Source: Saccharolobus solfataricus P2 (lineage in GTDB: Archaea; Thermoproteota; Thermoprotei_A; Sulfolobales; Sulfolobaceae). Taken from it: DNA of 64,000 bases. The stretch lies in assembly GCF_000007005.1 (NCBI RefSeq), contig NC_002754.1. The stretch is one strand, 5' to 3'. Each line of letters opens with the position of its first letter. Position 1 is the first letter of the stretch. This document shows positions 5,199 through 24,419 of this stretch, in pieces. The translations under genes and the position numbers were made by a program. The notes under the pieces were generated by a model. It was not told the origin of the DNA. It saw nothing but the letters and a program-made list of their open reading frames with translations, and searched no databases.

Positions 5199-5230
5199 GG
5201 GGTAGGAAGTCCATAAAACCCTTGGTTCCC
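5199..5230 (+). other. 3' arm of the 16S BHB processing stem
   Basis: GGGGTAGGAAGT-CCAT-AAA-ACCCTTGGTTCCC, complementary to 3639-3670. Confidence 0.9.
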
Positions 5231-5315
5231 TTTCACAGATGCGATTCTCCTCTTGGCCGGAGGAGAATTAAGAGCAAAGGGCCTATGGGAGATACTCTCC
5301 CTAAGGGCTCGATGA

Positions 5316-5357
5316 AGCTGGCTTAGGGCCGAAAGGCCGCTTAGAATCGTTAACGAC
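5316..5357 (+). other. 5' arm of the 23S BHB-like processing stem
   Basis: AGCTGGCTTAGG-GCCG-AAA-GGCCGCTTAGAATCGTTAACGAC pairs with 8401-8443. Confidence 0.85.
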
Positions 5358-8400
<3,043 letters not shown>

Positions 8401-8443
8401 GTCGTTAACGATTCTAGGCGGTCCGGTAAATCCTAAGTCAGCT
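8401..8443 (+). other. 3' arm of the 23S BHB-like processing stem
   Basis: GTCGTTAACGATTCTAGGCGGTC-CGGT-AAAT-CCTAAGTCAGCT; the lower bulge reads as 4 nt, so a relaxed BHB. Confidence 0.85.
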
Positions 8444-8457
8444 GAGGGTCGTATTAC

Positions 8458-8500
8458 GTTTGTTTTTATGTAAAGGAATATTTATAATTTTTGTTTTTTA
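8458..8500 (+). terminator. Probable oligo-T terminator region of the rRNA operon
   Basis: TTTGTTTTT and TTTTTGTTTTTT tracts right after the 23S stem. Confidence 0.45.
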
Positions 8501-8819
8501 AAAGGTTTTATGCCAGTTTTTCCAATATATGATCTGTACTACATCTGCTAAATTCGTACCGTCATATACTAAACCTATTAACCCAGCGTTTTTACACCCA
8601 CTTGGAGAATATAATGAGGGAATATTGGTGTGCCAATTAAAGCCTCAGTATAAGAGTTAACTAGACTCAGTCATTTACAATATTTACTTGCCTTTCCCCA
8701 TCCAATTGGGAACAATTCATAAAGTGCTTGCATCACTTAGTGTTCGAGATTGTTTTAAAGATTCCTCCTTCTATCTGTATTCTTGGAATTAGTGAGGAAA
8801 ATTGCCTCACCCTTTGTGG

Positions 8820-9941
8820 TTACTCTATTTTCTTTATCCTGTAAATCATTCCAGACCCAATCCAAGTTATGGCAAAGGTTAGTATTACATAATATCCTAT
8901 TGTTTCCCAGTAAACGTTGTTTAACGCAGCTATTTGATCCCAGAATAATCCAGTTAGGTTGAACTCAGCTTGTAATAGTCCTAACAACTCTATTGTACCT
9001 ATTCCAAACGCTATTAAAATTGATATTAGTGTTATCGTTAAGTTGTACCATATTTTTCTGAGTGGTGATAGGAATGCCCAGCCATAGGCGAACCTCATGA
9101 ATAGACCATCAGTAGTGTCAACTAGTGACATTCCTAGTGAAAATAGGATTGGGTATAGTAAGATTATGTAGATTGGTATGTGTATGTACGTTGATGATAG
9201 TATTGCCGATATTGATAGTATTGCCACTTCTGTCGCGGTGTCAAATCCTAGTCCAAAGAGGAATCCTACAATGTACATTTGCCATTGGTTTGTTATTATT
9301 TTGAACAACTTGTTAAAGTATTTATTCATGAAACCTCTTTTCTGTAATATTTCCTCTAGTTTTTGTTTGTCATATTTTCCTTCTTTATAAAACGAGTATA
9401 ATTCGTAGAATACTATTGTGTTTAGTAGGCCTAAAAGATAAAGAAATCCTCCACTTATTAGTGTCTCGATCAAATTTCCGGTGTTCTCGAGGGACGGTAA
9501 TGAGTTAGTTACCAGCCTTGAAGCCATCATTACTGCAAGGGATAGTAAAATTACTACTGTTGAATGACCAAATGAGAAGAAAGTGCCAACGAAGACTGGA
9601 TTCTTTCCTTCTTGTAACATTTTCCTAGTTACGTTATCTATTGCTGCCAAGTGATCAGCGTCTACTGCGTGTCTTAAGCCAAAGGTGTATGATAAAACTC
9701 CTAGTGTTATGAAGGTTCCTATTAGCTCACCGCTATCTGTGTTTAATGTTAGTGGTTTTTGCGGTAATGTGTATAGGAAGAGAAAAAGTAATGCTGTTAG
9801 TAATACGTTGAGTACGTAGAAAAGTGATAAGGTGACTAAATTTTTGTAACTAATTGTTTGTGTTAACGTATTGAGAATGGATCTCATCGCATATATGGAT
9901 TGTCTATCCATCATATAAATTTTTCTACTATTCTGAAGCAA
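8820..9941 (-). CDS. HoxN/HupN/NixA-family (NiCoT) nickel/cobalt permease; true start probably downstream of 9941
   Basis: Signature motifs GLRHAVDADHLAAID, FFSFGHSTVV, LGFDTATEV. Confidence 0.92.
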   Translation of the reverse strand: MLQNSRKIYMMDRQSIYAMRSILNTLTQTISYKNLVTLSLFYVLNVLLTALLFLFLYTLPQKPLTLNTDSGELIGTFITLGVLSYTFGLRHAVDADHLAAIDNVTRKMLQEGKNPVFVGTFFSFGHSTVVILLSLAVMMASRLVTNSLPSLENTGNLIETLISGGFLYLLGLLNTIVFYELYSFYKEGKYDKQKLEEILQKRGFMNKYFNKLFKIITNQWQMYIVGFLFGLGFDTATEVAILSISAILSSTYIHIPIYIILLYPILFSLGMSLVDTTDGLFMRFAYGWAFLSPLRKIWYNLTITLISILIAFGIGTIELLGLLQAEFNLTGLFWDQIAALNNVYWETIGYYVILTFAITWIGSGMIYRIKKIE

Positions 9942-10072
9942 TCCACAAGGCAGTTATTTCATGGTCTTGTGTAAGTTATAGTACAAGTTTTACTGGTTTC
10001 AATAACCTAAAATGCTGTAAATTGTAGAATATTTGATTAAAAGCTTATTAACCTAAATTGTTCTTTCATATT

Positions 10073-10894
10073 ATGCTTGTAAGTGTTGAATGGCTTAACA
10101 ACAACTTAAAGGACGTTAAGGTTGTAGAGATTGGTTATAATCCGCAGATAAATTATTATGAGGGGCATATTCCGGGGGCAGTATTAATAAATTGGAGAGA
10201 TTTTCTTGACGATAATTCTAGAGATTTCGCTAGTCCGGGGAAGTTGAGTAAGGTTTTAGGAAACGCGGGGATAAACAACGATGATCTCATTGTGTTATAT
10301 AGCGAAATGAATAATAGGTACGCATTTTACGTTTATTGGATTTTAAAGGCTTATGGACATTCAAATTTGGCTATATTAAATGGGGGAATTTATAAGTGGT
10401 TAAAAGAGGGTTATCCTATAGAAAGCGATGGTATAGTAGTTAATAAGAAGAGTGAATACAAGGCTAGGAAGCCTGATTGGTCCTCAAGGATTTTAGTATG
10501 GGAGTTATTGTCTAAACTTAAAGAGTTTGTTTTAATCGACTCTAGGAGTAAGGAGGAGTATGATGGTCTGACTACTGCACCTCCAGAGCACAAGTGTGAA
10601 CAAACCCAAATGAGTGGTCACATTCCGGGTGCTAAGAACATTCCATGGACAATTTTGCTTAATGAAGATGAGACTATGAAATCTAGGGATGAGTTGGAGA
10701 GAATATTTTCTTGGTTAAGTAAAGAGGATAAGATAGTGGTGTACTGTAGGACTGGTGCTAGGGCTTCTGTTGCTTGGTATGCTTTAAAAGAGGTTTTGGG
10801 ATTTAAGTTGGTCAGACTTTATGATGGTTCATGGGTTGAATATGGCAATATGGTTGGTGTCCCAGTAGAGAAATCAGTTAGTGATCGTTTCTGA
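10073..10894 (+). CDS. Thiosulfate/3-mercaptopyruvate sulfurtransferase (two-domain rhodanese)
   Basis: HIPGAV and GHIPGA motifs, active site VVYCRTGARAS, C-terminal LYDGSWVEY; ATG at 10073. Confidence 0.92.
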   Translation: MLVSVEWLNNNLKDVKVVEIGYNPQINYYEGHIPGAVLINWRDFLDDNSRDFASPGKLSKVLGNAGINNDDLIVLYSEMNNRYAFYVYWILKAYGHSNLAILNGGIYKWLKEGYPIESDGIVVNKKSEYKARKPDWSSRILVWELLSKLKEFVLIDSRSKEEYDGLTTAPPEHKCEQTQMSGHIPGAKNIPWTILLNEDETMKSRDELERIFSWLSKEDKIVVYCRTGARASVAWYALKEVLGFKLVRLYDGSWVEYGNMVGVPVEKSVSDRF

Positions 10895-10897
10895 TCT

Positions 10898-11254
10898 TCA
10901 TTTTCTCTCAAGGTATTTACAAAATAAAATGTCTAACTCTTTATACAGTTCTTCTGCTAATGCCTTGTCGTAGTATTTGCAATTGGCTATTAGCCCTGCT
11001 AAGCGTAATGTTTCAACTTTTGCTTCTTCTGATAGCTGAAACAGCTCGAAAGTTAACGCTGATTCTCGTGACGATAGATTAAGCAATTGCCTTAGTAGTT
11101 CTGAGCATTCTTCCTCGTACACTCTATTGTGATCAATTGTAGTTGATATATCTTCTCTAGGTCTCTTCTCGTTTCCTCTATTCTCCTCTTCAGTTCCTCT
11201 ATTCTCCTTATCTTCTCCTCTATTTTCTCCTTTAGTTCTTTTTCTTTTGAACAT
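10898..11254 (-). CDS. Hypothetical protein with N-terminal charged ENRG repeats; last gene of the Ehr operon
   Basis: 118 aa ORF starting 9 nt after the hyfB-like stop, same strand. Confidence 0.55.
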   Translation of the reverse strand: MFKRKRTKGENRGEDKENRGTEEENRGNEKRPREDISTTIDHNRVYEEECSELLRQLLNLSSRESALTFELFQLSEEAKVETLRLAGLIANCKYYDKALAEELYKELDILFCKYLERK

Positions 11255-11263: not shown

Positions 11264-13009
11264 TCACCCCATTACAACTACTATTATTACTACAATGAGC
11301 GTCAAAATAATGTATATAATGTACCATGAGATTGAGCTGTTGATAAGTGTTTTAGCGAAAATCTTCCCAAATCTTCTTATTGAATTTGCTAGTTTGTAGA
11401 GGTATTCCCAGAATACATCTAAACCGTATGTAGGTAAGAATTTCTCTTCTTCTGGCCTTAAGATTTTCTTTAGCATTTGTCTTATGTTATTTGCCATTGC
11501 AAATGCTGTGTATTCTTCTTTCTCGTTTACCCCATTGTTCCACGTTTCTGCTTTTCTTATTTTAGGCTTTCCAAAGGCGAGATAGCTTACAATAGAGAAG
11601 GCTACTAATAGTAAAATTATGTAGAGTGGCGATATTCCTCCGAATGTGGTGTTATAGTATTGTGTTAGAATCACGCTATTGGTTAGCATTCCTAGAATTG
11701 TTGTAGAGTTTTTATAAGGGTATATCAAATAAGGTAACGTGAATCCCAGTATGAGTACTATAAGTGCAGATAATAAGATGGGATATTTCTTTATTTTACT
11801 TAATTGTTCTCTTGTATTCTGAAATATTGATGTATACGTTATGTATCTAATTAATAAGGCTGTTGCTAGACCTTCTCCCATTGCGATAATTGCTCCAGTC
11901 ATTATGAAGAGGATAGATATCATGTTATGAAGTACGTATGAGAACATGAATAGGTTTTCAAGTAATAGCCAAGATGCTACTCCCCCTATATTCGGCAATA
12001 GTCCAGACATGGAGGAAGCCAATAGGGTTAGTCCTATTTCAATGTTTCTTATCTTTTTTGAATAAGTTATGCTCTGTTTTTCTTGTAAGCCAGAAGAGAG
12101 GAATAGTCCAGTTTTGGCTACTGAGTGTGCGAATGAGTATAAAATTACAGTGATTAAGGAAATGTGCTCTATTGAGGTAATGTTTAGTTGCTTTGAGATC
12201 ATGTATAGACTTAAGGCTACTAGTATTGCCCCGTTATTTTCTATTGTACTAAAGGCTAAAATTCCCTTAGTGTTCTCATTTACGTATCCGTAAAGTGCTC
12301 CAAAGAATATGCTAAATGCACCTATGGCCATTATTGTAAGTGAAAATCCAATCGGAATAGTTTGTGTTAAAATTGTAATTTTTAGTATTCCGTAAACCCC
12401 CATTAGCGTCATTGTGGCACTTAGTATTGCAGAAAAGTTTGATGGTGCTGTTCCATGTGCTATAGGTAGCCATTCCGATACAAGGAAAGGCATCATTCCC
12501 ATTTTTATTATGAATCCAAAAGTAGCGACAATCAAGGGAACTGGAGATGGCAAGTAATTGAAGTTTGTAGTGTTTGCTATTATAAATCCCGCTAAAATGA
12601 GAACTGTACTCAGCTCTCCAAATGCCATGAAAACGAATGGTGGTCTATTATTCTTTGCTGTTAGACCTATTGCTACATATGCTGGGATTGTCATTATTTC
12701 CCATCCTGCGAGGAATAACAGATAACCATCAGAGTTTAAGACAATGGTCATGCCTAAGATTGTTAGTATGTATAAGGGGGAGAGCCATTTCCCGTAATGA
12801 TCGTACTCTATTGAGAAAATTGAGGCAAGAATCCACACTGAGGTAGAAATTATGGAGAAGAATGAGAGAACTCCATTATATTCGTAAATCGAGGTGATAA
12901 GTAGTATTATTGATGATATCATTGTCAAGATATATCCCGCTTTTTTATTAAAGATTGAGAATATAATAGAAATTAGAAATGGGGGTAATGTATAGAGTAG
13001 CGTGTTCAT
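11264..13009 (-). CDS. Ehr/hydrogenase-4 membrane subunit, HyfB/HycC-like (NuoL/MrpA antiporter-like)
   Basis: Hydrophobic; FLAGWEIM, KMGMMPF..WLPIAHGTAPSNFSAILS, AFSTIEN. Start set at MNTLLY (13009), giving an ATGA overlap with the upstream gene. Confidence 0.88.
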   Translation of the reverse strand: MNTLLYTLPPFLISIIFSIFNKKAGYILTMISSIILLITSIYEYNGVLSFFSIISTSVWILASIFSIEYDHYGKWLSPLYILTILGMTIVLNSDGYLLFLAGWEIMTIPAYVAIGLTAKNNRPPFVFMAFGELSTVLILAGFIIANTTNFNYLPSPVPLIVATFGFIIKMGMMPFLVSEWLPIAHGTAPSNFSAILSATMTLMGVYGILKITILTQTIPIGFSLTIMAIGAFSIFFGALYGYVNENTKGILAFSTIENNGAILVALSLYMISKQLNITSIEHISLITVILYSFAHSVAKTGLFLSSGLQEKQSITYSKKIRNIEIGLTLLASSMSGLLPNIGGVASWLLLENLFMFSYVLHNMISILFIMTGAIIAMGEGLATALLIRYITYTSIFQNTREQLSKIKKYPILLSALIVLILGFTLPYLIYPYKNSTTILGMLTNSVILTQYYNTTFGGISPLYIILLLVAFSIVSYLAFGKPKIRKAETWNNGVNEKEEYTAFAMANNIRQMLKKILRPEEEKFLPTYGLDVFWEYLYKLANSIRRFGKIFAKTLINSSISWYIIYIILTLIVVIIVVVMG

Positions 13010-13611
13010 TTTCCCTTCACCTTCATCAAGGCTTCGAGTATTGTAAAGGGATTTGGTGGACAACCGGGGATTTCCACTACTGCTTCTAATGGTACTCCTT
13101 CGCCTATTATTCCTCCTGAGATAGCGCAAGCACCTAATAATATAACTACTTTGGGTTCTGGCATTGCTTCATAAGCTTTTTTTAACACTTCTTTCATTTT
13201 CTCTGTCATTACCCCCATTACTACTAATGCGTCTGCATGTCTTGGAGTATTGGTGAAGAATATGCTAAATCTTGTCATATCGTATTCTGGTGATGAGATC
13301 AGCTTCAGTTCCATGTTACATCCTCCGCATGTGCCGGAGTCTATTGGGTAAAGGTAAAATGACCTTTTGAAGAGGGGTTGTGTTTTGTTTATTGTATATA
13401 TTCTTGGATTGAGATTTGGTCTATAGTTGGGATAGCATCTTCTGCAAAATACGCATCTTTCCTTTATCCACTTTCCATCCTTTATGGCGTTTGTTGGACA
13501 GTTTACAGTTCCCTCTCCTTGTATTTCAGTGCTCCATTCCGCTATTTCCTTCGGGTATTTCTCTGTCATTACTCCTTTTCTTAAACCTCTAATAAACCAC
13601 CAATTCTTCAC
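13006..13611 (-). CDS. Ehr/hydrogenase small subunit (HycG/NuoB-like) with an N-terminal ferredoxin-like segment
   Basis: CGGC...PRHAD...GAC...GCPP; N-terminal CP...CVFCRRC. Confidence 0.88.
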   Translation of the reverse strand: MKNWWFIRGLRKGVMTEKYPKEIAEWSTEIQGEGTVNCPTNAIKDGKWIKERCVFCRRCYPNYRPNLNPRIYTINKTQPLFKRSFYLYPIDSGTCGGCNMELKLISSPEYDMTRFSIFFTNTPRHADALVVMGVMTEKMKEVLKKAYEAMPEPKVVILLGACAISGGIIGEGVPLEAVVEIPGCPPNPFTILEALMKVKGK

Positions 13612-14783
13612 TTTAACATCACTCCTATTTCACTTACCCAAATTCCAAAACTTTCCCAATTGAATTGAAAATCGGTAAATATTGTGTTTATCACGCTTTT
13701 CAAAAATAGGTTGAGATTGACTTGTGAAGGAGTGAGAAGTGATACTGAGTCGATAATCCCGTTATTTAACTTGACGTAATAGGCTAGATCACCAGATGGA
13801 CTCTCGACTCTGGCTAGTCCCTCTCCCCCTCCTTGTTTGTGATTTTTCCCTCTCTCGTTATTGCTGTTCTTTATTTCATCGTGTAACTCTACTAAAATTT
13901 TGGCCGACTCGATTATCTCCATTCCCCTAACTAGGAACCTTCCGAATGAGTCTGCCTCTTGTGTGATAACTGTTCTAAAACCTAAGTCTTCATAAGGTAA
14001 GGCTTTAAAGTCCTTTCTCGCATCGTAAGCGAGTCCAGCAGCTCTTGCAGCTGGTCCTATACTGTTTTCATCTATTATTTTTCCGTTTTCTTGGAGTCTA
14101 TCTATGAAGATTCTACTTTCAAGTAGCCCATCGAAGATTTGTTTAAATTCCTTGGTAATATCTATTATTCTTAATAAATTTCCGAAATCGCAGTTAACCC
14201 CGTTAATTGCATTAACGCCAAAGAAATACCTGTGACCACACATTTTGCCTATTAATCTGTTGACTTTTTCAACGAGGTGCAAGAGATGGTATGTAGGTAC
14301 GTTTAGTGATGTGGTTTCAGTTAATCTCGATATTACGAATAAGTGATTTCTTATTCTTTCCAATTCTATTTCGGCTATTCTCTTTAGTTGGGTTGGATAG
14401 TCTTGTTCTAATTCTAACGAATCTTCTACAGCGAGTAAAAAGGATATTGTGTGGGAAGCACTAAATGGAGCGTTTATTCTCTCTACTCTGAGTAAGGCAT
14501 CGTCCACAGTTAAACCGCTTATTACTATTTCTCTGTTCTTGTATACCTCAGCGTCTATTCCTAGAATTTTTTCACCATTAGTTGTAATAATGAATTTTAT
14601 TGTTTCGAGTAGTCCTCCAGCTGAGGGTCCGTAAATGAACTTGAATGATCCATACGTTTGTGTTATATTTGGTTTGTTTTCCTCACATTTCTCTTCTGTT
14701 ATCGTTTTTTCGTAGAGACAATAATCCCCTATTTTGCCTATTTTCCTTCCCTCGCCTTTTTGAGTCCATTTATAGTATTTCAT
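13608..14783 (-). CDS. HycE/HyfG/NuoD-like large subunit lacking NiFe-binding cysteines (Ehr type)
   Basis: YGPSAGGLLE, KRIAEIELERIRNHL, ARVESPSGDL. The RxCxxC position reads ERINAPFSASH and the DPCxxC position reads DFQFNWESF. Confidence 0.88.
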   Translation of the reverse strand: MKYYKWTQKGEGRKIGKIGDYCLYEKTITEEKCEENKPNITQTYGSFKFIYGPSAGGLLETIKFIITTNGEKILGIDAEVYKNREIVISGLTVDDALLRVERINAPFSASHTISFLLAVEDSLELEQDYPTQLKRIAEIELERIRNHLFVISRLTETTSLNVPTYHLLHLVEKVNRLIGKMCGHRYFFGVNAINGVNCDFGNLLRIIDITKEFKQIFDGLLESRIFIDRLQENGKIIDENSIGPAARAAGLAYDARKDFKALPYEDLGFRTVITQEADSFGRFLVRGMEIIESAKILVELHDEIKNSNNERGKNHKQGGGEGLARVESPSGDLAYYVKLNNGIIDSVSLLTPSQVNLNLFLKSVINTIFTDFQFNWESFGIWVSEIGVMLK

Positions 14784-16102
14784 GAAAGGATCACCAGTAA
14801 AAGTATACCGAGAACGAGTGGAATTATAGATGATACAAGAGAAATGAACGTGATTAGCTTGGGTTCTTCTGAGACTGTCAGCTCTCTTTGAGTGAATATC
14901 ATTTTGGTAACGTTATAGTTTATTGAGATGAAAGCTGTTGCCAGAGAAATTACTATTAATATAAACTCTATAATATAACCTTTTTGAATTAATGTTTGTA
15001 ATATGAAGAATTCTCCTATGAAAGTTGCAAAGGGTGGCGTACCAGTTACAGCTAGAGAGGACAATAATAGCGATACTGAGGTGAGTTTTAGTTTTGTATG
15101 TAAACCGCCTATGTTTTCAATTCTCTTTTCTCCAAGGACTTTCAATACAATTCCGCTAGAGTAAAAGGCACCCGCTTTGCCAAATGCGTGTGCAAGAAGG
15201 AGGATTATTGCTCCGAGGGGTTGGCCTATTGTAAGTCCAAGCAAGGCTAGGTTCATGTTTTCTATGGTTGAGTATGCAAACATTCTCTTTATATGCCATT
15301 GATAGGTTAGGATAATCGATGCGGTTATTATCGATAAAGTTGTGAATATTACAAAGATATTGGTTAATGGATTTACTTGATATACCATGTACACCACGTA
15401 AGTTGCGGCTGGAAGTAGTACTCCAGAAAATAATGCGCTTATTGGAGATGGCGCTTCGCTATGAGCATCTGGTAACCACGTGTACATGGGGAAAACTCCT
15501 GCTTTTGTTCCAAATCCTATTAAAGCTAGAGCTACCGCAAGTTTAGTTATTATGTTGTTTTCAGGTTTTGTAAGTATTTCCGTTACAGTTAATGTATGGT
15601 AATTATAGTAGATGAAAATTATTGAGAATAGGGCTAAGGTTACTCCAGCGGATACTATGATTATATACCTCCACGTGGCTTCCAGTGAGGTTTCAGATGC
15701 TTCCGCTATTATTAGAAGAGCTGAGGTCACAGTTGTGAGTTCTACCCCAACCCACATTAGACCGTAATTGTTCATAATAACGGTAAAAAGCATTGATGAT
15801 GCGAAGGAATTTAGTAGAATGTAGTATAATCTTTCACTTACTATTTTGCTTGGTTTTATATAATTCATGGAGTAAAGGGTAGATAGGAGATAAATTGATG
15901 CAATCACCAATAGGAAAAACGTTGTGAACTTAGTGATGAAGAAGAAAGAGTTTTTGATTGGTGCTAAGAAGTAAAGGAAGATGCTGATGATTGATGTTAG
16001 TACTGCTGATAGTACGGATAGGGTCTTAATTAGCTTGAGTTTGAAAAAGCCTACGTTACTTATTATAGGAATTAATAGTAAGAGTATGGGTTCAATATTC
16101 AT
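14780..16102 (-). CDS. Ehr/hydrogenase-4 membrane subunit, HyfF-like (NuoM/MrpD)
   Basis: WVGVELTTVTSALL, LEATWRY, GFGTKAG.FP...WLPDAHSEAPSP, AYSTIE. Confidence 0.88.
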   Translation of the reverse strand: MNIEPILLLLIPIISNVGFFKLKLIKTLSVLSAVLTSIISIFLYFLAPIKNSFFFITKFTTFFLLVIASIYLLSTLYSMNYIKPSKIVSERLYYILLNSFASSMLFTVIMNNYGLMWVGVELTTVTSALLIIAEASETSLEATWRYIIIVSAGVTLALFSIIFIYYNYHTLTVTEILTKPENNIITKLAVALALIGFGTKAGVFPMYTWLPDAHSEAPSPISALFSGVLLPAATYVVYMVYQVNPLTNIFVIFTTLSIITASIILTYQWHIKRMFAYSTIENMNLALLGLTIGQPLGAIILLLAHAFGKAGAFYSSGIVLKVLGEKRIENIGGLHTKLKLTSVSLLLSSLAVTGTPPFATFIGEFFILQTLIQKGYIIEFILIVISLATAFISINYNVTKMIFTQRELTVSEEPKLITFISLVSSIIPLVLGILLLVILS

Positions 16103-16107
16103 TTAGA

Positions 16108-16749
16108 TCACCCTTTTAGTTCATCTAACCTAGAATGTTCTGCTTTTTCTAACGTCAAAATTGAGGAAATTATAACTAGCCCTAATACATCAAGGAATAC
16201 ACTCACTTCTATTAAGAAGGGAATGGGTAGTAATAAAATACCAAAAAGAATTGTGGAGTTTTCTTCTTCTATGAAACCGATGAATTGAAATATTGTACTT
16301 TTTCTAGAAATAATAAGGAATAGACCCTGGAAGAGTAAGACAAAGGCGAACAATAGCATTAGCGTGTTGTTGATTTCCGTACTTATGGGTATTTTCTCCA
16401 ATACGAAATAATATACTACTAGAGATGCTATAATGGAAAATGCGAGATTCAATATTAGTTCAGATGCTACTCCCTTAGAGCTTTCTCTAGCTCCTGGTTT
16501 CTCTTTAACTAGACCTCTAAATAAAAATATTGTGATTAGTACAGTCCTCAGTAGTATTACTGTTATTCCTAAAATTATATAGTCGATGGAAAAAAGTGAG
16601 ATTCCTAGATGGAAGGCTAGAATTGCGATTAAGGTAGATTGAATGGCTTGTGCATATATTGCTGGTTTAAAGTAAGCTTGTCCTTGAATGTAAAAGGCTG
16701 AAATTAATATGAACGTTGAGAGTAGTTCTAGGATCTCTGAGTTAATCAC
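16108..16749 (-). CDS. Ehr/hydrogenase-4 subunit HyfE-like
   Basis: 213 aa membrane protein with QFIGFIEEEN and EVSVFLDVL motifs, lying between the hyfC-like and hyfF-like genes. Confidence 0.8.
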   Translation of the reverse strand: MINSEILELLSTFILISAFYIQGQAYFKPAIYAQAIQSTLIAILAFHLGISLFSIDYIILGITVILLRTVLITIFLFRGLVKEKPGARESSKGVASELILNLAFSIIASLVVYYFVLEKIPISTEINNTLMLLFAFVLLFQGLFLIISRKSTIFQFIGFIEEENSTILFGILLLPIPFLIEVSVFLDVLGLVIISSILTLEKAEHSRLDELKG

Positions 16750-16756
16750 TATACCT

Positions 16757-17710
16757 TCACCCCAACAAGACAGTAAGCGTTAATGAAAGTAGGGAAAGGA
16801 GGAACGCCACTGCGAGATAATCCTGAACTTTAAATAGCCTTAATTTAGCTAGGGTGGTGTTTATTATAACGCTAATAAGGATTAGGAGTAACCATTTGCC
16901 GAACATCACCGCAATGTCTATTAAAGAGCCTATAATTCCAACTTGCAAAAACCAAGGGAATATAAATACGTTTAGGAGTACTGAGCCTAATAGATATTGT
17001 TTGATGTAAGAACCCCACTTTAGTATTGCAAGTAATTTTCCGCTATATTCGTAGAGAACTCCATCGTCTATCATACCCATTTCGCTTAGTCCAGGACTCT
17101 CTACGGGTAATTTACCGGTTTCGAATAACCATAACATGAAGAATGAGATCGATACGAAGATGTGGTCTAGTTGAAAGTAATGAGAGAGGCTTTGGGAAAC
17201 GTAATCTAATGTTACGTAAGGGTTGTTTGTACCAGTTATTAGTGCAACGCCGAAGAAAACCGTTATCAGTGTAGCTTCAGATAAGAAAGTGAAAGAGAGA
17301 ATTCTACTTACTCCTAATGCTACGAAATTACTTCCACTTTCTAGGGAGGCAATTATTTTTATGAACGCAGCTAAGGAGAAGAGTAATGCTCCCCCTAAGA
17401 AATCCACCGTAGGGGTGAGTAAGATGGGCACTGGATAAACTACTGGGATGACGAAGGAAATAAGGAGATAAATCCCAAAAACTATGTAAGGAGCATAAAC
17501 AAATAGAGATAATGAGTTATTTGAAATAACGGTTTCTTTTCTTAGTAGTTTAATTATATCATAGTAAGGTTGCAGAACACTGGGGCCTTTACGCCCTTCT
17601 ATTATGGCTTTTCCCCTATCGTAAATTCCTTGATATAATGGGGATAGTAGAATAACTACAATAACTTGAGTTATGGTTAAAACTACTATCTGAGCTTCAT
17701 TTGGCGCCAT
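16757..17710 (-). CDS. Ehr/hydrogenase-4 subunit HyfC/HycD-like (NuoH family); first gene of the operon
   Basis: GRKGPSVLQPYYDIIKLLRKE, ETGKLP, EYSG. ATG at 17710 is preceded by the SD-like GGGTGG. Confidence 0.88.
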   Translation of the reverse strand: MAPNEAQIVVLTITQVIVVILLSPLYQGIYDRGKAIIEGRKGPSVLQPYYDIIKLLRKETVISNNSLSLFVYAPYIVFGIYLLISFVIPVVYPVPILLTPTVDFLGGALLFSLAAFIKIIASLESGSNFVALGVSRILSFTFLSEATLITVFFGVALITGTNNPYVTLDYVSQSLSHYFQLDHIFVSISFFMLWLFETGKLPVESPGLSEMGMIDDGVLYEYSGKLLAILKWGSYIKQYLLGSVLLNVFIFPWFLQVGIIGSLIDIAVMFGKWLLLILISVIINTTLAKLRLFKVQDYLAVAFLLSLLSLTLTVLLG

Positions 17711-17733
17711 ACTTCCCACCCTTTTGTGGTGAA

Positions 17734-17804
17734 GTAGGCGTCATCAGCCCCTATCATTAATCAAGAGGCGGTTCGGGGTTATCCCCAGGGGGACGCCATC
17801 CCCT
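17734..17804 (-). promoter_or_regulatory. Fluoride riboswitch (crcB motif)
   Basis: Minus strand reads AGGGG-ATGGCGTC-CCCCT (P1), an extra hairpin GGGGATAACCCC, GAACC, GCCTCT..AGGGGC (P2), TGAT-GACGCC-TAC. GGCGTC/GACGCC form the pseudoknot. All crcB consensus elements are present. Confidence 0.9.
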
Positions 17805-17845
17805 ACTTCATTGAGTAAACTCCGCATGTTAATATCGAAGCAAAC

Positions 17846-17856
17846 TATTTTAAAGC
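17846..17856 (-). promoter_or_regulatory. Probable TATA box of the riboswitch/Ehr operon
   Basis: CTTTAAAATAG on the minus strand, predicting a start near 17820, just 5' of the aptamer. Confidence 0.45.
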
Positions 17857-18454
17857 TATCGCTACACCATAAGGATGAAGTAAACTCGAACTATATTATT
17901 GTAAATGCTACTTAGGCTGGAAATAGAATCGAATACTAATTTATTGTATCAAGTATATTTAATAGCCTAAAATCAAACTATTAAAATTAATAAATATATA
18001 ACAATAGATCGAATTTATAGAGCCTTTCTTTTATCAAGGAACGAAGTAGATAAACGAAGATAAACATAAAATATTTTTAACACAACTCGTACGTCATGTT
18101 CTGGGTTTTTATATCCTCTTCAAAAATAAGAGTTAAGTAAAGAAATCAGAGAGGAAATGTTGTTCCTCCTTCTTCAAACAAACTAGATCTTTCAAAATGT
18201 TAAACCTGGAAGTCACATGACCTACCTAAATCTGTCAAGTATCTGATAACTTTATTATCACTATTGTACGAGCTCACATTAGACAAAAATACTACAAAGC
18301 TAAAATGTGATCTCAGACTAGCCGTACTTCCTCTCAAACGAGAGATGTAATTCCGAATCAATGAGAAGAACCAACCTAACTCATCTTTTAGATTAATGTA
18401 AATAATGGTCGAATTATCGTATTTTTCTCCTTTTAAGCTTTATCCATTTAAGTA

Positions 18455-18865
18455 TTGATTATCATGATAGGCAAGGTAATTGTTGTACTAGCAATCATTC
18501 TAGTAGGAGTATTTCTCTTAACTCATACTAACCTATTCTATCATCCACAGACTCCAGTTTCTAAAGGGCAAGAGTACTATACGACTACAAATGTTCAAAA
18601 CATAACTTATCAATTTGGTATAATATCAAATGTGTCAACAAATTACACTGTTCCCTTGAAGTTAAGTTATGGCAATGTTACAATTAAAGTAATGGGACAT
18701 AACGCGTTTAACTTAACCGTGGTAAATAACTCCACTGTAATTTACTCTGGTATAGTTGATAGATATTTTAGTAAGACATTTATCATTGGTGGCGATGTTA
18801 AGTTAGTGTTTTCATCAAGGCAAGGGTTAGAAGTTAATGTAACGATTTTTGATGTGTTAAGTTAG
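18455..18865 (+). CDS. Hypothetical membrane-anchored/secreted protein
   Basis: N-terminal hydrophobic helix, N/T/V-rich body with NxS/T sequons; start may be ATG 18464. Confidence 0.7.
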   Translation: MIIMIGKVIVVLAIILVGVFLLTHTNLFYHPQTPVSKGQEYYTTTNVQNITYQFGIISNVSTNYTVPLKLSYGNVTIKVMGHNAFNLTVVNNSTVIYSGIVDRYFSKTFIIGGDVKLVFSSRQGLEVNVTIFDVLS

Positions 18866-18896
18866 TTTTTTCTTTTTATCTTCCATTTCTTTTTGT

Positions 18897-19595
18897 ATGT
18901 ATAAGTACTTTGACGCTCATTGCCATTATTCCTATTTAAAGAAGAAGTATGAAGGTTATCTTATAGCTGCGGTTTCAATGGATTACCAATCCGCTATGGA
19001 TACTTTCTCCTTAAAGAGTGACAACGTATTAGTAGGAGTTGGTATTCATCCTTGGCGTGTTCATGAGGAGGATCTGACTAGAATTTTATCGTTGATTATT
19101 AAAGCTGATTTCGTTGGAGAAGTTGGTTTGGATTACAGATTCGCTAAGGCTCCTAAAGAATTGCAGATTAAATATTTTGAGGAGCAGATAAAAGCGGGAG
19201 AAGGTAAGTTGATAAACGTCCACGCTTTAGACGCTTGGAAAGACGCTTTCAACATTTTAGTTAAAAACGACGTGAAGAGTGCTATCTTTCACTGGTATAC
19301 TGGTCCCATTAATCTGTTGAAGGATATTGAGAGTGCTGGGTATTTTATTTCTATAAATCCTTCCGTTTCTTTCCAGAAGAAGCATCAAGAAGTGTTGAAA
19401 AATGTCGACCTAAAAAACGTTCTTACAGAGAGTGATGGTGGGTATGAATATAGGGGTAAGCTATTAGAACCTAGTGATATACCTAACGCTATCTCATTTA
19501 TGAGCAATTTTTTAGGTATAGAAGAGTATAAGCTAGTGAGAATAATAAGCAATAATTTTTTCAAAGCTTATGGAGTAAACCCAGTTAATAATTGA
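18897..19595 (+). CDS. tatD: TatD-family nuclease/hydrolase
   Basis: DAHCH, GVGIHPW, VGEVGLDY, FHWYTG, LTESDG. Confidence 0.9.
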   Translation: MYKYFDAHCHYSYLKKKYEGYLIAAVSMDYQSAMDTFSLKSDNVLVGVGIHPWRVHEEDLTRILSLIIKADFVGEVGLDYRFAKAPKELQIKYFEEQIKAGEGKLINVHALDAWKDAFNILVKNDVKSAIFHWYTGPINLLKDIESAGYFISINPSVSFQKKHQEVLKNVDLKNVLTESDGGYEYRGKLLEPSDIPNAISFMSNFLGIEEYKLVRIISNNFFKAYGVNPVNN

Positions 19596-19649
19596 TATTA
19601 ATACGGATAGTAAGATCGTTTTAAATTTTCTAGATCAGTATACTATTGT

Positions 19650-21623
19650 ATGGAAGTTAGGAAAACCATATGCCCTTTCTGTGGTGTAGGTTGTGGTCTA
19701 GATTTTTATGTAGAGAATAACTTTATATTTAGGGTATCTCCATCACAAGAGCACATTGTTAGCAGAGGACACGTTTGCGGTAAGGGCGCTGTTGCTTCAG
19801 AAGTAATTTACGCCTGGGACCGTTTAACTTATCCTTTAAAGAGAGTTAAGGACACTTTCGTTAGGACTACTTGGGATGAAGCAATTAGCGATATTGCTAG
19901 CAAGTTAAAGGAAATTAGGAGTAAGTATGGCTCAGAGGCTATTGCCTTTTACGGGGGTTGTCAGAATACGTTGGAGGAAGGATATTCGTTCATGAAGTTG
20001 GCTAGAGCTTTGGGTACTAATAATGTTGACTCGTGTGCTAGGGTTTGTCATGAGCCCTCTGCAATGGCTTTAAAGGAGTTAGTCGGTATTGGAGCTTCTT
20101 CTGTTACCGTTTCTGAAATTTTGAATGCTAGAAATATTGTAATTTCTGGAGAATCTGTGACTGATAGCCATCCCGTTTTGTCTCAATATTTAGTTGAGGC
20201 TAAGAGAAAGGGTGTGAAAATTGTAGTTATTGATCCTAGGATGACTGGTACTGCTAGGATTGCTGATTTGTTTTTACAGATTAGTAGTGGTACTGATATT
20301 TATCTATATAACGCTGTTGCGAATTATTTGATAAGTAACGGATTATATGATAGTAAGTTCGTTAAGGAACGTGTTGAGAACTTTGATGAGTTTAGGGAGA
20401 TTGTAAAGTCTTATACTATTGAGGAAGCCGAGAGGATTACTAGTGTTAGTAAGGATAAGATTATTGAGTTCGCTAGGATTATTGCAAATAAGCCTACAAT
20501 ACTCTCATGGGGTTTGGGTTTAACTCAGTCAAGTGGCGTTAATGCCGTAAAGGCTTACATTAACCTAGCATTGCTTACTGGGAATGTTGGTATTAATGGT
20601 GGGGGACTATTAGTTTATAGGGGTCAAACAAATGTTCAAGGTTCTGGTGATTTAATAAAGCCAGATGTTTTCCCAAATGGTCCAATGAATGAGGAAAACG
20701 CTAAGGAGTTGAGTAAGATTTGGGGTTTTGTTCCTCCAATCAAGAAGGGTTTGAGCATAACTGAGGCTTTTCTAAGGGATAGTAATGTTAAGGCACTTTT
20801 TCTAATGAATTACAATCCAGCTTTTAGTTTGCCAAATAGATACAAGGTTATTAAGTTCTTGAAGTCGTTGGAATTGTTAGTAGTAATGGATCCGTTTATG
20901 ACTGAGACTGCTAAATATGCACATTACGTTTTGCCTACTCCTTTATGGGCTGAAAAGGAGGGTTCAGTTACTAATTTAGATCGTACTGTTAAGTGGAGGT
21001 TTAAGGTTGTTGATCCTCCTGGGGAGGTTAGGAGTGAGTTGTGGATAATTAAGAGGATTGCTGAGAAGTTAGGTCTTACTGGTTTTCATGACGATCCTAA
21101 ATTGGTGTTTAAAGAGATAAAGGAGGTTGCAAAGTTGTACTCTAATTTGACCCTTGATGAATTGATGGATTACTCTGTAGACTCCAGGTATCCTGATCAC
21201 GAGTCTAGTCTGTACAAGGATAGGTTTATGACTCCTAGCGGTAAGGCTAAGTTTGGATTAGTTAGGTATAACGAAATATCTGGTGATAGTTACATTTTAA
21301 TTACTGGTAGAGTTGTGACTAGGTATAATTCTGATGAGTTGATCAAGAGAGTCCCAGGATATAGGAATTTCAGTTCTGATTTGTTGATAAACCCAGAGGA
21401 TGCTACAAAGCTGAATATCAAAGACGGGGATATGGTTAAGGTTGTTTCTAAATGCGGCATGGCTGTGATGAAAGCCAAGCTAACTAACGAGGTTAAGGTT
21501 GGTCATACGTTTGCTTATATGCATGATTACTATGTAAACAACGTTGTCTGTGACGATTTAGATGATATTTCTAAGACTCCAAGATATAAGATAACCTTTG
21601 TCAAGATTGAAAAATTGGGATAA
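19650..21623 (+). CDS. Formate dehydrogenase alpha-subunit-like molybdopterin oxidoreductase (FdhF-like, Cys ligand)
   Basis: CPFCGVGC...C [4Fe-4S] motif, SCARVCHEPS metal-ligand motif, RGQTNVQG, WAEKEGSVTN. Confidence 0.88.
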   Translation: MEVRKTICPFCGVGCGLDFYVENNFIFRVSPSQEHIVSRGHVCGKGAVASEVIYAWDRLTYPLKRVKDTFVRTTWDEAISDIASKLKEIRSKYGSEAIAFYGGCQNTLEEGYSFMKLARALGTNNVDSCARVCHEPSAMALKELVGIGASSVTVSEILNARNIVISGESVTDSHPVLSQYLVEAKRKGVKIVVIDPRMTGTARIADLFLQISSGTDIYLYNAVANYLISNGLYDSKFVKERVENFDEFREIVKSYTIEEAERITSVSKDKIIEFARIIANKPTILSWGLGLTQSSGVNAVKAYINLALLTGNVGINGGGLLVYRGQTNVQGSGDLIKPDVFPNGPMNEENAKELSKIWGFVPPIKKGLSITEAFLRDSNVKALFLMNYNPAFSLPNRYKVIKFLKSLELLVVMDPFMTETAKYAHYVLPTPLWAEKEGSVTNLDRTVKWRFKVVDPPGEVRSELWIIKRIAEKLGLTGFHDDPKLVFKEIKEVAKLYSNLTLDELMDYSVDSRYPDHESSLYKDRFMTPSGKAKFGLVRYNEISGDSYILITGRVVTRYNSDELIKRVPGYRNFSSDLLINPEDATKLNIKDGDMVKVVSKCGMAVMKAKLTNEVKVGHTFAYMHDYYVNNVVCDDLDDISKTPRYKITFVKIEKLG

Positions 21624-21656
21624 ATTATTTTTAAAAAGGAAGGTGTTTCTCTATAT

Positions 21657-22400
21657 ATGTCTGAAGTTGCTATTGTAACCGGAGCATCAAAAGGTATAGG
21701 GAGAGCTGTTGTTAAGTTACTTAAGGAGAATAATTATACTGTTGTTTCGATTTCTAGGAGTAAATCGGATATTGGTGATGTAATTTATGATGCTGATGTC
21801 AGTGATAGGAGCACTGTATTTAGGATTGTAAATGAGGTACTGGAGAAGTTTGGCAAGATTGACGTCTTGGTTAATAATGCAGGTTTTGGAGTTTATGGAT
21901 CTTTTTTAGAGACTGATTTAAACGAGGAGGAGTACATGATTAGGACTAATCTTCTAGCCCCACTATACTTCATGAAGGCCGTGCTTCCACATATGGTTTC
22001 TAGGAGGAAGGGAAGTGTTGTTAACATCGTTTCGGAAGCTGCTTACGTATCTACACCCAAGCTTTTAGTTTACTCGGCAACTAAGGCTGGTTTAGCCAGT
22101 TTAACTAATGGCTTGTGGGCTGAAATGAGGAAATATAATGTTAGGGTAAGTGGTGTTTACCCTGGCCCTGTCAGGACTAATTTTACCTCTCATCCTTCAT
22201 TTAAAAAGAATAATGGCGATCCTTTTGCTAATTATAGCGTTGAGCCAGAGGCTGTAGCTAAAGCCGTTCTAAAAGCAATAAGGACTGGTAAGAGGGAGAT
22301 TTATGTACCTTCAAGGTTGAAATTGGACCCCTATTTCCTTAAGCTTGCTAACCTTTTCCAGAGTTTCACTTATACTATAGTAAGTAATTATTTTAGCTAA
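21657..22400 (+). CDS. Short-chain dehydrogenase/reductase
   Basis: TGASKGIG, NNAG, YSATK. Confidence 0.92.
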   Translation: MSEVAIVTGASKGIGRAVVKLLKENNYTVVSISRSKSDIGDVIYDADVSDRSTVFRIVNEVLEKFGKIDVLVNNAGFGVYGSFLETDLNEEEYMIRTNLLAPLYFMKAVLPHMVSRRKGSVVNIVSEAAYVSTPKLLVYSATKAGLASLTNGLWAEMRKYNVRVSGVYPGPVRTNFTSHPSFKKNNGDPFANYSVEPEAVAKAVLKAIRTGKREIYVPSRLKLDPYFLKLANLFQSFTYTIVSNYFS

Positions 22401-22483
22401 CACATACGGGAGAAAAATTATAAAATGTTAAGGTTATTTTGTTAGAGAAAAATTTATTACCGGAAATATTACTGGCTATACAT

Positions 22484-23647
22484 ATGCCGTTAAATAAAGG
22501 GTTAACTAGGGTTAAAGCTATCGTGATAATAATTGTTGTTATAATCGCAGTGATAGCTGGGGTTGTAGGATATTATTTAATTAATCATCCTTCTAATTCT
22601 GTAACTACTTCATCTTCATCTACTACAACTAGTTCTTCCCTATCTAGTACTAGCATATCTTCATCTACTACTAATATTACTTCATCTCAAGGTATTACAG
22701 TCTTCGTAGCGGGTGCTTATCTTGCAATTCTCAACTACCTAGCTGACCAATTTCAGAACGCTACTGAAATTCCAGTTCATGTTGTAGGTAGTGGCTCCTT
22801 CGCATTAGCTTCACAAATAGCTTCCCAGACTCCAGTTCCAGCAAACGTTTTCATTCCAGTTGCCTATATTCAAGCTGTTGAGTTAACTGGCAGTAGGAAT
22901 CCCGGTTGGGCTATAGCTTTTCTATCAGATCAGATGACAATAGTTTACTCTAACTACACTACCAAATCTCCTTATTGGTCCCAACTATACTCCAATTACA
23001 CCATGGCTATGGAGACCAACAATACTAAGTATTGGTATAATTTCTTCTACTTATTGACCACCAGGTTCAGTCTGGGAATTGCTAATCCTAACACTGACCC
23101 AGAGGGATTATATGCGTATTTGATACTTCAAATGGCAAGTTATTTATATGCTAATCATAATATAAGCTACTTTGTGCATCTCGTTAAAGCGAATCCAAAT
23201 GTCAAAGTAGCCCCTAGTACAGCTAACTATGTAGCGCCCTTAAAGGCGGGTACTTTAGACTTCACATTCTCTTATGTTTCCTATGCTGTATCTCAAGGAT
23301 TGGAATATCTAAAACTACCTCCTTGGTTAAGTTTTGGTTATTATCCGAACGAGACGACATGGTACAGTCAATTTGCTTATAATATAAGTGTAAATGGCCA
23401 AACATTAACAATTCATGGAAATCCAGTTTACTTATACATTACCATTCCATTAAACGCTTCGAATATACAAACTGCATATCAGTTTATTGGCTTCGTACTG
23501 GGTCATGAATCTCAACTTACCAGATTTAATGTAATTCCAATACAACCAGCTTTATTGTATAATGAAACTAGTAATATTCCGCAGCCTATATTGAACTTGT
23601 TAAAATCTGGTGAGTTGAAGTATGCGGGTAATTTCTCTGAAGTTTAA
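22484..23647 (+). CDS. ABC substrate-binding protein, molybdate/tungstate (ModA/WtpA-like), membrane-anchored with a Ser/Thr linker
   Basis: VFVAGAY, GSGSFALASQI, ANPNTDPEG motif; N-terminal TM helix then an S/T-rich spacer; ATG at 22484. Confidence 0.75.
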   Translation: MPLNKGLTRVKAIVIIIVVIIAVIAGVVGYYLINHPSNSVTTSSSSTTTSSSLSSTSISSSTTNITSSQGITVFVAGAYLAILNYLADQFQNATEIPVHVVGSGSFALASQIASQTPVPANVFIPVAYIQAVELTGSRNPGWAIAFLSDQMTIVYSNYTTKSPYWSQLYSNYTMAMETNNTKYWYNFFYLLTTRFSLGIANPNTDPEGLYAYLILQMASYLYANHNISYFVHLVKANPNVKVAPSTANYVAPLKAGTLDFTFSYVSYAVSQGLEYLKLPPWLSFGYYPNETTWYSQFAYNISVNGQTLTIHGNPVYLYITIPLNASNIQTAYQFIGFVLGHESQLTRFNVIPIQPALLYNETSNIPQPILNLLKSGELKYAGNFSEV

Positions 23648-24419
23648 TACCCTACAAGCCATATCCTTTTTTCTATCTCTCCTTTTAGCTTTACCAACTC
23701 TCTATTTGCTATTTTACGGCTATGGTCCGTTTTTTGTTAAATCAGTCGCGTTCAGTAGCTCTTTACTTTCCTCAATAGGTTTATCGTTTTTTGCTTCAGC
23801 CCTTTCCATTGTAATAACTGTTCTTATCTTTACTCCCTTGGCATATTATTTATCAAGACATAGGAATCCAATTATTGAGACTTTAGTCGATGTGCCAGCA
23901 TCTATACCGCATCCCCTAGTTGGCATTGCTTTAATTTTCATTGATAGTCCCACTAATCCTCTAGGTGCTTTACTTTACTCTCATGGTATTATTTTTTACT
24001 ACACTTATACTGGCTTATTGTTGGCTTTGATTATTGTTTCTAGTCCTATCTATATTCGTTCGATGCAGAATTTCTTCGAGTCTCTTCCAAGGTCTTATGA
24101 AATATATGCCATGAGTTTAGGTGCTTCCGAGTTCAAAGTATTTACTTCCGTAGTTTTCCCTCTTTCAATTAGGGGGATAATATCTGCTGGGCTAACTTCT
24201 ATTGCTAGAGCTATAAGTGAATTTGGATCTGTGGTAATAGTTGCACCTTATGTTACTGGCTGGTTGTTTAACAACGCGTATGTGGCTTCAGTATATATTT
24301 ATAATGAATACGAAACGTATTTTAGCGCTTCAATAAGTGCCTCAGCTACGCTTCTCCTTTTCTCCCTCATACTAATAGTTACAAGTAGGATAGTTAACCA
24401 TTTCTTGTATAAGACATGA
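23622..24419 (+). CDS. ABC permease (ModB/WtpB/CysT-like)
   Basis: LVDVPASIPHPLVG, EAA-like loop YEIYAMSLGAS, ARAISEFGS. Confidence 0.85.
   Translation: MRVISLKFNTLQAISFFLSLLLALPTLYLLFYGYGPFFVKSVAFSSSLLSSIGLSFFASALSIVITVLIFTPLAYYLSRHRNPIIETLVDVPASIPHPLVGIALIFIDSPTNPLGALLYSHGIIFYYTYTGLLLALIIVSSPIYIRSMQNFFESLPRSYEIYAMSLGASEFKVFTSVVFPLSIRGIISAGLTSIARAISEFGSVVIVAPYVTGWLFNNAYVASVYIYNEYETYFSASISASATLLLFSLILIVTSRIVNHFLYKT

Follow-up and report, generated by a model that had tools for sequence, protein, structure and literature searches.

A fluoride riboswitch upstream of a nickel-less, Ehr-type operon in Saccharolobus solfataricus P2

A stretch of 64,000 nucleotides (nt) from Saccharolobus solfataricus P2 (contig NC_002754.1 of assembly GCF_000007005.1), referred to throughout as the window, carries on its minus strand an operon for a nickel-less, hydrogenase-related complex of the Ehr type, a kind already known. 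Six tightly packed genes (17710-11264), all with intact and full-length open reading frames (ORFs), are arranged in the order NuoH/HyfC-like, HyfE-like, HyfF-like, large, small and HyfB-like subunit, and are followed by a conserved seventh ORF of 118 amino acids (aa). The principal result of the present analysis is that a fluoride riboswitch aptamer lies directly before the first of these genes, on the same strand as the operon, and that an aptamer match is found at the corresponding place in every other locus compared. An earlier, sequence-only reading of this DNA had hinted at fluoride solely by proposing 'fluoride phenotyping', and the riboswitch itself was absent from its reasoning. With the riboswitch, the 'unknown substrate' of that reading becomes a concrete and testable hypothesis on fluoride and acid stress.

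Two bodies of literature are brought together by this result. Ehr complexes are relatives of the group 4 [NiFe] hydrogenases, lack the Ni/Fe ligands, possess antiporter-like subunits and are described as being of undetermined function (PMC6349859, PMC4758237, PMC5037454, PMC6728331). They have been called a missing link between hydrogenase and complex I since 2013, and are still without an assigned function, substrate or inducing condition (PMC6728331, PMC6349859). On the other side, 'formate hydrogen lyase' (FHL) genes were listed in 2010 among those associated with the crcB RNA motif (PMC2864571; also PMC11139923), and their linkage to the riboswitch was read as a switch to fermentation (PMC11139923). 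The riboswitch-linked 'FHL' operons examined here, from two archaeal phyla and from probably bacterial relatives, are nickel-less Ehr operons, which suggests that both literatures describe one object. In the literature searched, with the 2013 paper defining Ehr lying outside that search, no paper joins Ehr or hydrogenase-related complexes with fluoride riboswitches; bringing riboswitch control and the Ehr concept together is new in this respect. The linkage supplies a candidate inducer (fluoride) and a scorable phenotype (fluoride tolerance, or cytoplasmic pH at low external pH), and offers a natural comparison between intact copies of the operon and the S. solfataricus copies disrupted by insertion sequence (IS) elements. 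Fluoride inhibition in bioleaching is a further matter that it touches, as is the question how so small a complex-I-like machine can work with no more than two Fe-S clusters.

The riboswitch, its leader and its linkage to the operon

The fluoride riboswitch aptamer (crcB RNA motif, Rfam RF01734) is located at 17728-17812 on the minus strand. It matches the full-length model with 52 bits, compared with an Rfam gathering score of 34 bits, at E = 1.6e-11 when the whole window is searched and 2.2e-13 in a local search. Its 3' end is 17 nt before the ATG of the first gene. A TATA-like box (TTTAAAAT, 17847-17854, minus strand), read from the sequence about 35 nt upstream of the aptamer, is the putative promoter of the operon, and a T/A-rich box is present at a similar position in the aligned leaders of Sulfolobaceae.

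An expression-platform hairpin is predicted at 17703-17742 (minus strand), in which the 3' strand of the aptamer pseudoknot, GACGCCUACUUCACC (17742-17728), pairs with the complementary stretch GGUGGGAAGUAUGGCGCC that holds the Shine-Dalgarno sequence and the start codon. Both the Shine-Dalgarno GGUG (17720-17717) and the AUG (17710-17708) are covered by this predicted hairpin, which is part of the minimum free energy fold of the leader (-46 kcal/mol, z = -3.2). A matching hairpin with compensatory changes can be drawn in the leaders of six other Sulfolobales loci (L001, L002, L005, L007, L010 and L011); examples are the replacement of CUUC/GAAG by CCUC/GAGG and the pair CCUAUCUC/GAGAUAGG in Metallosphaera and Acidianus. 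The simplest reading of the sequence and its folding is that the leader acts as a translational ON switch. The ribosome-binding site would be sequestered in the hairpin as long as fluoride is absent; once fluoride is bound, the pseudoknot would be stabilised, the ribosome-binding site freed and translation allowed to start.

Linkage between aptamer and operon was then considered in 17 other distinct loci containing relatives of the large subunit, locus L008 being a duplicate of L007. An aptamer match was found directly upstream of the first gene and on its strand in 17 of 17, with a score above the gathering threshold in 14 and below it in three. The 14 comprise four Sulfolobaceae loci (L001, L002, L005 and L007), Acidianus (L011), Metallosphaera (L010), Thermoplasma volcanium (L006), Picrophilus (L009), five metagenomic archaea (L003, L012, L016, L017 and L019) and one relative that is probably bacterial (L021). 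In Acidianus and Metallosphaera the gene order is permuted to HyfF-like, large, small, HyfB-like, NuoH/HyfC-like and HyfE-like, and the aptamer is again found before the gene that leads the operon. The most distant relatives, L020 and L021, are both probably bacterial; their large subunits of about 500 aa include a fused NuoC-like domain and share about 30% identity with the window protein.

Other genes of fluoride-related types are encountered around several of these operons. In L020, the operon is followed by genes for Usp, MFS, enolase, DUF190, CrcB and MutS-like proteins, forming an island at 14347-21361, and in L021 a second, divergent fluoride riboswitch (6554-6616) precedes two paired MutS-like genes. 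The gene types that neighbour the operon in L020 and L021 are classic for the fluoride regulon (PMC2864571, PMC11139923). A further fluoride riboswitch is located next to paired MutS_V-like ATPases in L003 (2353-2417), such paired ATPases being found in L021 as well, and another next to a prenyltransferase and an inorganic pyrophosphatase in L012 (11498-11561).

The hydrogenase-like subunits and the family to which they belong

The large subunit (13608-14783, minus strand, 391 aa) belongs to PF00346, with a weak match to PF00374, and has the NuoD/HycE fold. Its AlphaFold2 model has a predicted local distance difference test (pLDDT) score of 92.9 and is aligned by Foldseek with the 49-kDa subunit of complex I and with HycE at template modelling (TM) scores of 0.74-0.82; the closest solved relative is MbhL (6cfw_L, 3.8e-20). 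In alignments with E. coli HycE and HyfG and with P. furiosus MbhL, the motif RINAPF (residues 102-107) takes the place of the hydrogenase R-x-C-G-x-C, as the sequence-only reading had proposed for RxCxxC, so that C241 and C244 of HycE correspond to N104 and F107. The second replacement had to be relocated. The string DFQFNW (371-376), taken previously as the counterpart of DPCxxC, exists but is nine residues out of register; its D371 falls on a conserved Asp that precedes the true counterpart by nine residues, and alignments of both 6 and 140 sequences place DPC531xxC534 of HycE opposite G380-I-W382-V-S-E385. The claim that cysteine ligands for nickel are missing still holds after this correction. 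Across 120 homologues, the four former ligand positions are N104 (120/120), Phe or His at 107, W382 (120/120) and E385 (117/120), and no column of conserved cysteines is available elsewhere, each of C22, C33, C182 and C198 of the window protein being a cysteine in at most 35% of these homologues. As in NuoD, there is no C-terminal maturation extension, the protein ending six residues after the position of the last cysteine (E385).

With both CxxC motifs absent throughout the homologues, the complex cannot be a [NiFe] hydrogenase, in keeping with what was concluded earlier. The opposite view, that of a genuine formate hydrogenlyase or group 4 [NiFe] hydrogenase receiving electrons from an FdhF-like neighbour and nickel from a NicO neighbour, is suggested by the database names of the family ('formate hydrogenlyase' or 'Ni,Fe-hydrogenase III large subunit') and by the presence in the window of a molybdopterin oxidoreductase (19650-21623) and a NicO transporter (8820-9941). 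It is contradicted by the four missing Ni/Fe cysteines, the want of any alternative conserved cysteine and the lack of a maturation peptide. Moreover, the operon contains no HycB-like or HycF-like subunit, and a scan of the window ORFs, up to 38.4 kb, detected no hyp maturation or protease gene. Synteny of the FdhF-like, NicO and rhodanese genes nearby is shared with S. solfataricus alone, and every other locus lacks them. Such an enzyme is hardly credible here, and the databases mislabel the family as 'formate hydrogenlyase'. A partnership of the Ehr complex with formate dehydrogenase, together with a nickel link through NicO, was rejected as a candidate since the FdhF-like, NicO, rhodanese and TatD genes share synteny with S. 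solfataricus only.

The substituted pocket is far from degenerate. About 40 residues of the large subunit are invariant, including the replaced positions N104 and W382, and conservation is strong around the former active site (E101, R102, N104, D371, W382 and E385). As the substitutions are conserved across homologues, they are therefore the signature of a preserved site and not of decay. The idea of a decaying remnant without current function could draw on the IS-split and frameshifted copies of two S. solfataricus genomes. It is opposed by six unbroken, full-length ORFs both in the window and at 13 other loci, by 36-89% identity with many invariant residues and by the conservation of the cis-regulatory RNA as well, and it can be given next to no credence.

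Quinone use 'like NuoD', another suggestion of the sequence-only reading, finds no support from the canonical ligands: H38 and Y87 of T. thermophilus Nqo4 correspond to L59 and A105, position 105 being Gly, Ala or Val across the family, and a canonical quinone site was rejected for this reason. The NuoD of Sulfolobus likewise lacks the canonical quinone ligands (PMC4758237). At the N-terminus of the large subunit, residues 1-45 form a short beta-sheet (pLDDT above 90) that aligns with the 'GxDER...GxYxVYY' segment of NuoC-like domains. HycE and the relatives of about 500 aa have a fused domain of this type, of which the stretch of about 45 aa seems to be a truncated vestige.

The small subunit (13006-13611, minus strand, 201 aa; PF01058) consists of a NuoB/HycG-like domain preceded by an N-terminal half-ferredoxin domain with four cysteines. 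It contains exactly eight cysteines. C95, C98, C162 and C184 align with the hydrogenase-type CxxC...C...CPP of HycG, HyfI and MbhJ, and C38, C53, C56 and C59 form a C-P...CxxCxxC pattern that is the ligand set for one cluster of a 2x[4Fe-4S] ferredoxin. Both sets had been announced by the sequence-only reading, and both could be located; all eight residues are invariant in 116 homologues, apart from a single Ser at position 184. Among solved structures the best matches are MbhJ (1.2e-24) and HycG (4.2e-22). The AlphaFold2 model (pLDDT 90.2) folds the N-terminal domain with confidence, and in a comparison of this domain with folds of the Protein Data Bank (PDB) only the NuoB-like part of the subunit was aligned. 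The extra domain is not universal in the riboswitch-linked clade because it is lost in L012 and L017, whose small subunits still have the NuoB-type cluster site and whose operons still have the riboswitch.

A search of 1.84 billion representative proteins returned 445 relatives of the large subunit at E <= 1e-10, 140 of which were used to build a FastTree phylogeny; the EhrL reference sequences of the defining paper are not in this tree. True hydrogenases, with cysteines at all four positions (CCCC), are basal; close to the HycE/HyfG type, an extensive radiation of Cys-less sequences branches off. Within this radiation, the tree places the window protein in a clade of proteins of about 390 aa with N[F/H]WE at the four positions, adjoining CF.D-type relatives that have the same six-gene architecture. 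The nearest relatives in the protein search are likewise Cys-less, and the closest named relatives of the window proteins come from Saccharolobus and Sulfolobus species. Acidophilic archaea account for almost every named carrier of the core family: Sulfolobales, Thermoplasmatales, Sysuiplasma and metagenome-assembled genomes from mine drainage.

The assignment to the Ehr type made in the sequence-only reading is thus borne out by four ligand positions that are non-Cys family-wide, the lack of a maturation extension, the NuoD/HycE fold and the Cys-less nearest relatives. A NuoD/group-4-related large subunit devoid of Ni/Fe ligands is encoded beside a NuoH-like gene and two PF00361 genes, as is usual for Ehr. 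Among the hallmarks of group 4 [NiFe] hydrogenases, the two CxxC motifs and the maturation extension are lacking, and the proximal [4Fe-4S] site of the small subunit is present.

The membrane subunits and a proposed function

Family matches of all six genes on the minus strand confirm the order hyfC-hyfE-hyfF-large-small-hyfB given earlier. The first gene encodes a NuoH/HyfC/HycD-like membrane subunit (16757-17710, 317 aa, ATG at 17710; PF00146, 9.9e-32) and the second a HyfE-like membrane subunit (16108-16749, 213 aa; NF008556 HyfE, 4.4e-09). The two antiporter-like subunits announced by the sequence-only reading are present and both match PF00361: the HyfF-like one (14780-16102, 440 aa) does so at 6e-44 and also matches NF005042 with 814 bits, and the HyfB-like one (11264-13009, 581 aa) matches NF005046 with 1014 bits. 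The start of the latter was placed at the ATG at 13009 because the NF005046 match begins at residue 41 of the longest ORF. All these genes are on the minus strand. The overlapping stops and starts described previously are real at three of the five junctions (HyfF-like/large, large/small and small/HyfB-like, 4 nt each), whereas the NuoH-like/HyfE-like and HyfE-like/HyfF-like junctions are gaps of 7 and 5 nt.

The hydrophilic ORF of 118 aa (10898-11254, minus strand) starts 9 nt downstream of the HyfB-like gene and has no match in Pfam or NCBIfam. Homologues directly follow the operon in the Sulfolobaceae loci L001, L002, L005 and L007, and one of 74 aa is located behind the permuted operon of Metallosphaera (L010). 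Considering this conserved position, the ORF is probably the seventh gene of the operon, and it may encode an accessory subunit or an assembly factor. In the decayed S. solfataricus copies, a frameshift has hit the HyfF-like gene, and a DDE_Tnp_2 IS element splits the HyfB-like one (L007, 8681-10004 and 11733-14685; likewise L008), and in L008 the HyfE-like gene is split as well (8021-8675); the riboswitch and the large and small subunits remain intact in these copies.

Many of the charged residues associated with ion translocation have been retained. The NuoH-like subunit possesses those common to E. coli NuoH, HycD and HyfC (D51, K54, R136, E145, E221 and R291), E145 and R291 aligning with E157 and R293 of E. 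coli NuoH. In the HyfE-like subunit, whose profile returned no match among PDB sequences, the invariant residues E89, E163 and D187 are found in E. coli HyfE too. The HyfF-like subunit retains E121 in transmembrane helix 5, K200 in helix 7 and E364 in helix 12, the Lys of helix 8 being replaced by Pro. The HyfB-like subunit retains E104 in helix 5 and K169 in helix 7; in the core family, its helix 8 Lys is replaced by Leu and its helix 12 Glu by Ser, Ala, Thr, Val or Ile.

From these sequence features, a function can be proposed, that of a fluoride-induced, Fe-S-dependent ion pump of six, possibly seven, subunits offsetting the acidification caused by HF; we regard this proposal as about evenly poised between right and wrong. 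At low pH, fluoride is mostly present as HF, which crosses membranes, dissociates in the near-neutral cytoplasm and acidifies it; fluoride toxicity in acidophiles is attributed to this entry and acidification, and is assumed to force extra proton pumping (PMC12831704). Under the proposed scheme, fluoride inside the cell would switch on production of the complex. The two [4Fe-4S] clusters of the small subunit, one held by the N-terminal half-ferredoxin and the other of the N2/proximal type, would connect, as a short wire, the surface with the large subunit's former Ni-Fe pocket. Electrons would be fed in by a low-potential soluble donor, most plausibly ferredoxin, and be passed to an acceptor other than H+. 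By analogy with complex I and with the membrane-bound hydrogenase (MBH), the chemistry of the pocket would drive the export of H+ or Na+ through the NuoH-like, HyfE-like and two antiporter-like subunits. The complex would in this way restore the cytoplasmic pH and the energisation of the membrane once HF has diffused in, dissociated and loaded the cell with H+ and F-, a problem that should be worst for acidophiles, the main carriers of the family. The coupling residues kept in the NuoH-like and HyfF-like subunits, the invariant Fe-S cysteines and the preserved pocket all count in favor of an ion pump. Its proposed induction by fluoride is backed by the aptamer in the window, by the aptamer matches at the 17 other loci, also under permuted gene order, and by the compensatory changes of the hairpin; it would fit the acidophilic carriers and parallel the riboswitch-controlled Na+/H+ antiporters of bacteria.

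A number of observations weigh against this proposal. Three of the aptamer matches, although correctly placed, score below the gathering threshold (L004, 30.9 bits; L020, 27.9 bits; L018, 22.4 bits). The operon encodes neither an electron donor nor an acceptor and has no gene for a NuoI-like or a NuoC-like subunit, and its large subunit lacks the canonical quinone ligands of NuoD. In L012 (9125-9679) and L017 (9245-9718), the N-terminal four-Cys domain is missing entirely from the small subunit. The HyfB-like subunit of the core family is deprived of the helix 8 Lys and of the helix 12 Glu/Lys of canonical antiporter-like subunits, and may not be a full proton path for this reason. Finally, the operon is decayed in the two S. 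solfataricus genomes fetched and is therefore dispensable under at least some conditions.

Part of this evidence would be expected of a redox-independent, Mrp-type cation/proton antiporter, in which the large and small subunits would be a structural cap, the Fe-S clusters relics and fluoride induction a means of pH and ion homeostasis without electron transfer. The complex has no catalytic metal site, no NuoI-like or NuoC-like subunit and no donor module, the loci compared show no conserved redox partner in the vicinity of the operon, and the loss of the N-terminal cluster domain in L012 and L017 points the same way. Na+/H+ antiporters are, in addition, the second most common class of fluoride-riboswitch genes (PMC11139923). 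A relic would however not be expected to keep its eight cluster cysteines invariant in 116 homologues, the former active site is under more constraint than a passive cap needs, and of the four canonical channel charges, the core-family HyfB-like subunit keeps only two. A mere antiporter is consequently considered unlikely, and the ion pump driven by electron transfer is retained as the working proposal.

An alternative use of the pocket would be the direct export of F- or HF, bound either by the former active site (Asn104, Phe/His107, Trp382 and Glu385) or by a membrane subunit. Such a complex would replace or complement the Fluc channels, which should fail against the inside-positive membrane potential by which acidophiles draw anions in (PMC12831704). 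The riboswitch linkage at every locus examined and the invariance, or near invariance, of the pocket substitutions are compatible with direct export, and no crcB gene was seen in any of the archaeal loci fetched, a statement that applies to the loci and not to whole genomes. In L020, on the other hand, CrcB is encoded in the same gene island as the operon, so that both coexist. We know of no anion transport by any subunit of the complex I or Mrp type, and this counts against an exporter, which is deemed improbable. The same low expectation applies to the broader idea that Ehr-type complexes as a class constitute the primary, energy-driven arm of fluoride defence, their pocket or membrane arm handling F-/HF directly. 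If it were true, acidophiles would rely on a complex-I-like machine, powered by redox chemistry or by the proton-motive force, to expel fluoride itself and not only the accompanying protons.

Genomic surroundings and comparison with known systems

The window has a G+C content of about 35%, against about 61% for the 16S-23S rRNA operon that it contains (3673-8404, plus strand). A number of ORFs longer than 110 aa that overlap this rRNA operon are spurious (5700-6038, 6608-6991 and 7602-8012). Between it and the Ehr operon are located a NicO/HoxN-type nickel/cobalt transporter (8820-9941, minus strand; PF03824, 3.8e-109), which adjoins a complex without a nickel site, and a two-domain rhodanese (10058-10894, plus strand). 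The adjacency of both genes looks coincidental, their synteny being common only to S. solfataricus. On the other side of the operon, a plus-strand region (19650-24419) begins with the FdhF-like molybdopterin oxidoreductase of 657 aa (19650-21623), composed of Fe4S4, Molybdopterin and Molydop_binding domains. The gene is preceded by a TatD-like hydrolase and followed by an SDR, then by an SBP_bac_11 solute-binding protein and an ABC permease; this region could represent a Mo/W enzyme with an oxyanion uptake system. The next gene (24443-26620, plus strand) encodes a protein of 725 aa with Kelch repeats and fibronectin type III domains, unusual for a crenarchaeon, that may be exposed at the surface or secreted.

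The complex shares with other Ehr complexes, such as that encoded by Rv0082-Rv0087 in M. tuberculosis, its homology to group 4 hydrogenases, the loss of the Ni/Fe ligands and the linkage to NuoH-like and antiporter-like genes (PMC6349859, PMC4758237, PMC6728331). The archaeal clade differs from them by a large subunit shortened to about 390 aa, in which only about 45 aa remain as a NuoC-like vestige, by its N-[F/H]-W-E pocket and by the additional N-terminal one-cluster domain of its small subunit.

With the E. coli hydrogenase-4 (Hyf) and hydrogenase-3 (Hyc, formate hydrogenlyase; PDB 7z0s), it has in common the HyfB-, HyfC-, HyfE-, HyfF-, HyfG- and HyfI-like subunits and the hydrogenase-type CxxC of the small subunit instead of the tandem CC of NuoB, HycG being the best structural match of the small subunit. 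In contrast to these enzymes, the Ni/Fe cysteines, the ferredoxin subunits HyfA/HyfH (HycB/HycF), HyfD, the maturation peptide and its protease, and the formate dehydrogenase partner are all lacking. The closest solved sequences are those of the P. furiosus MBH (PDB 6cfw) and of its sulfur-reducing counterpart MBS (PDB 6u8y), with MbhL at 3.8e-20 and MbhJ at 1.2e-24. Both are ferredoxin-driven, ion-translocating, complex-I-like assemblies; the intact NiFe site, MbhK (NuoC-like), MbhN (NuoI-like) and the Mrp-type Na+ module of MBH have no equivalent in the six subunits of the window complex.

Similarity to the Q and P modules of complex I (NuoB, D, H and L/M/N) resides in the fold of the large subunit (TM 0.74-0.80), in the coupling residues of the NuoH-like subunit and in the helix 5 Glu and helix 7 Lys of the antiporter-like subunits. 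The quinone ligands H38/Y87 and the subunits NuoA, C, I, J, K and E-G of complex I are absent, the operon having six subunit genes and one unassigned ORF, and the cluster motif of the small subunit is of the hydrogenase type. As for the fluoride-riboswitch regulon (crcB/Fluc, CLC-F, Na+/H+ antiporters, enolase, pyrophosphatase and MutS-like genes), the operon shares with its members the aptamer class and the position of the aptamer in the 5' leader. It departs from the 'FHL' entry of the published regulon in that the genes, here and in every relative checked, encode a nickel-less Ehr complex without formate dehydrogenase.

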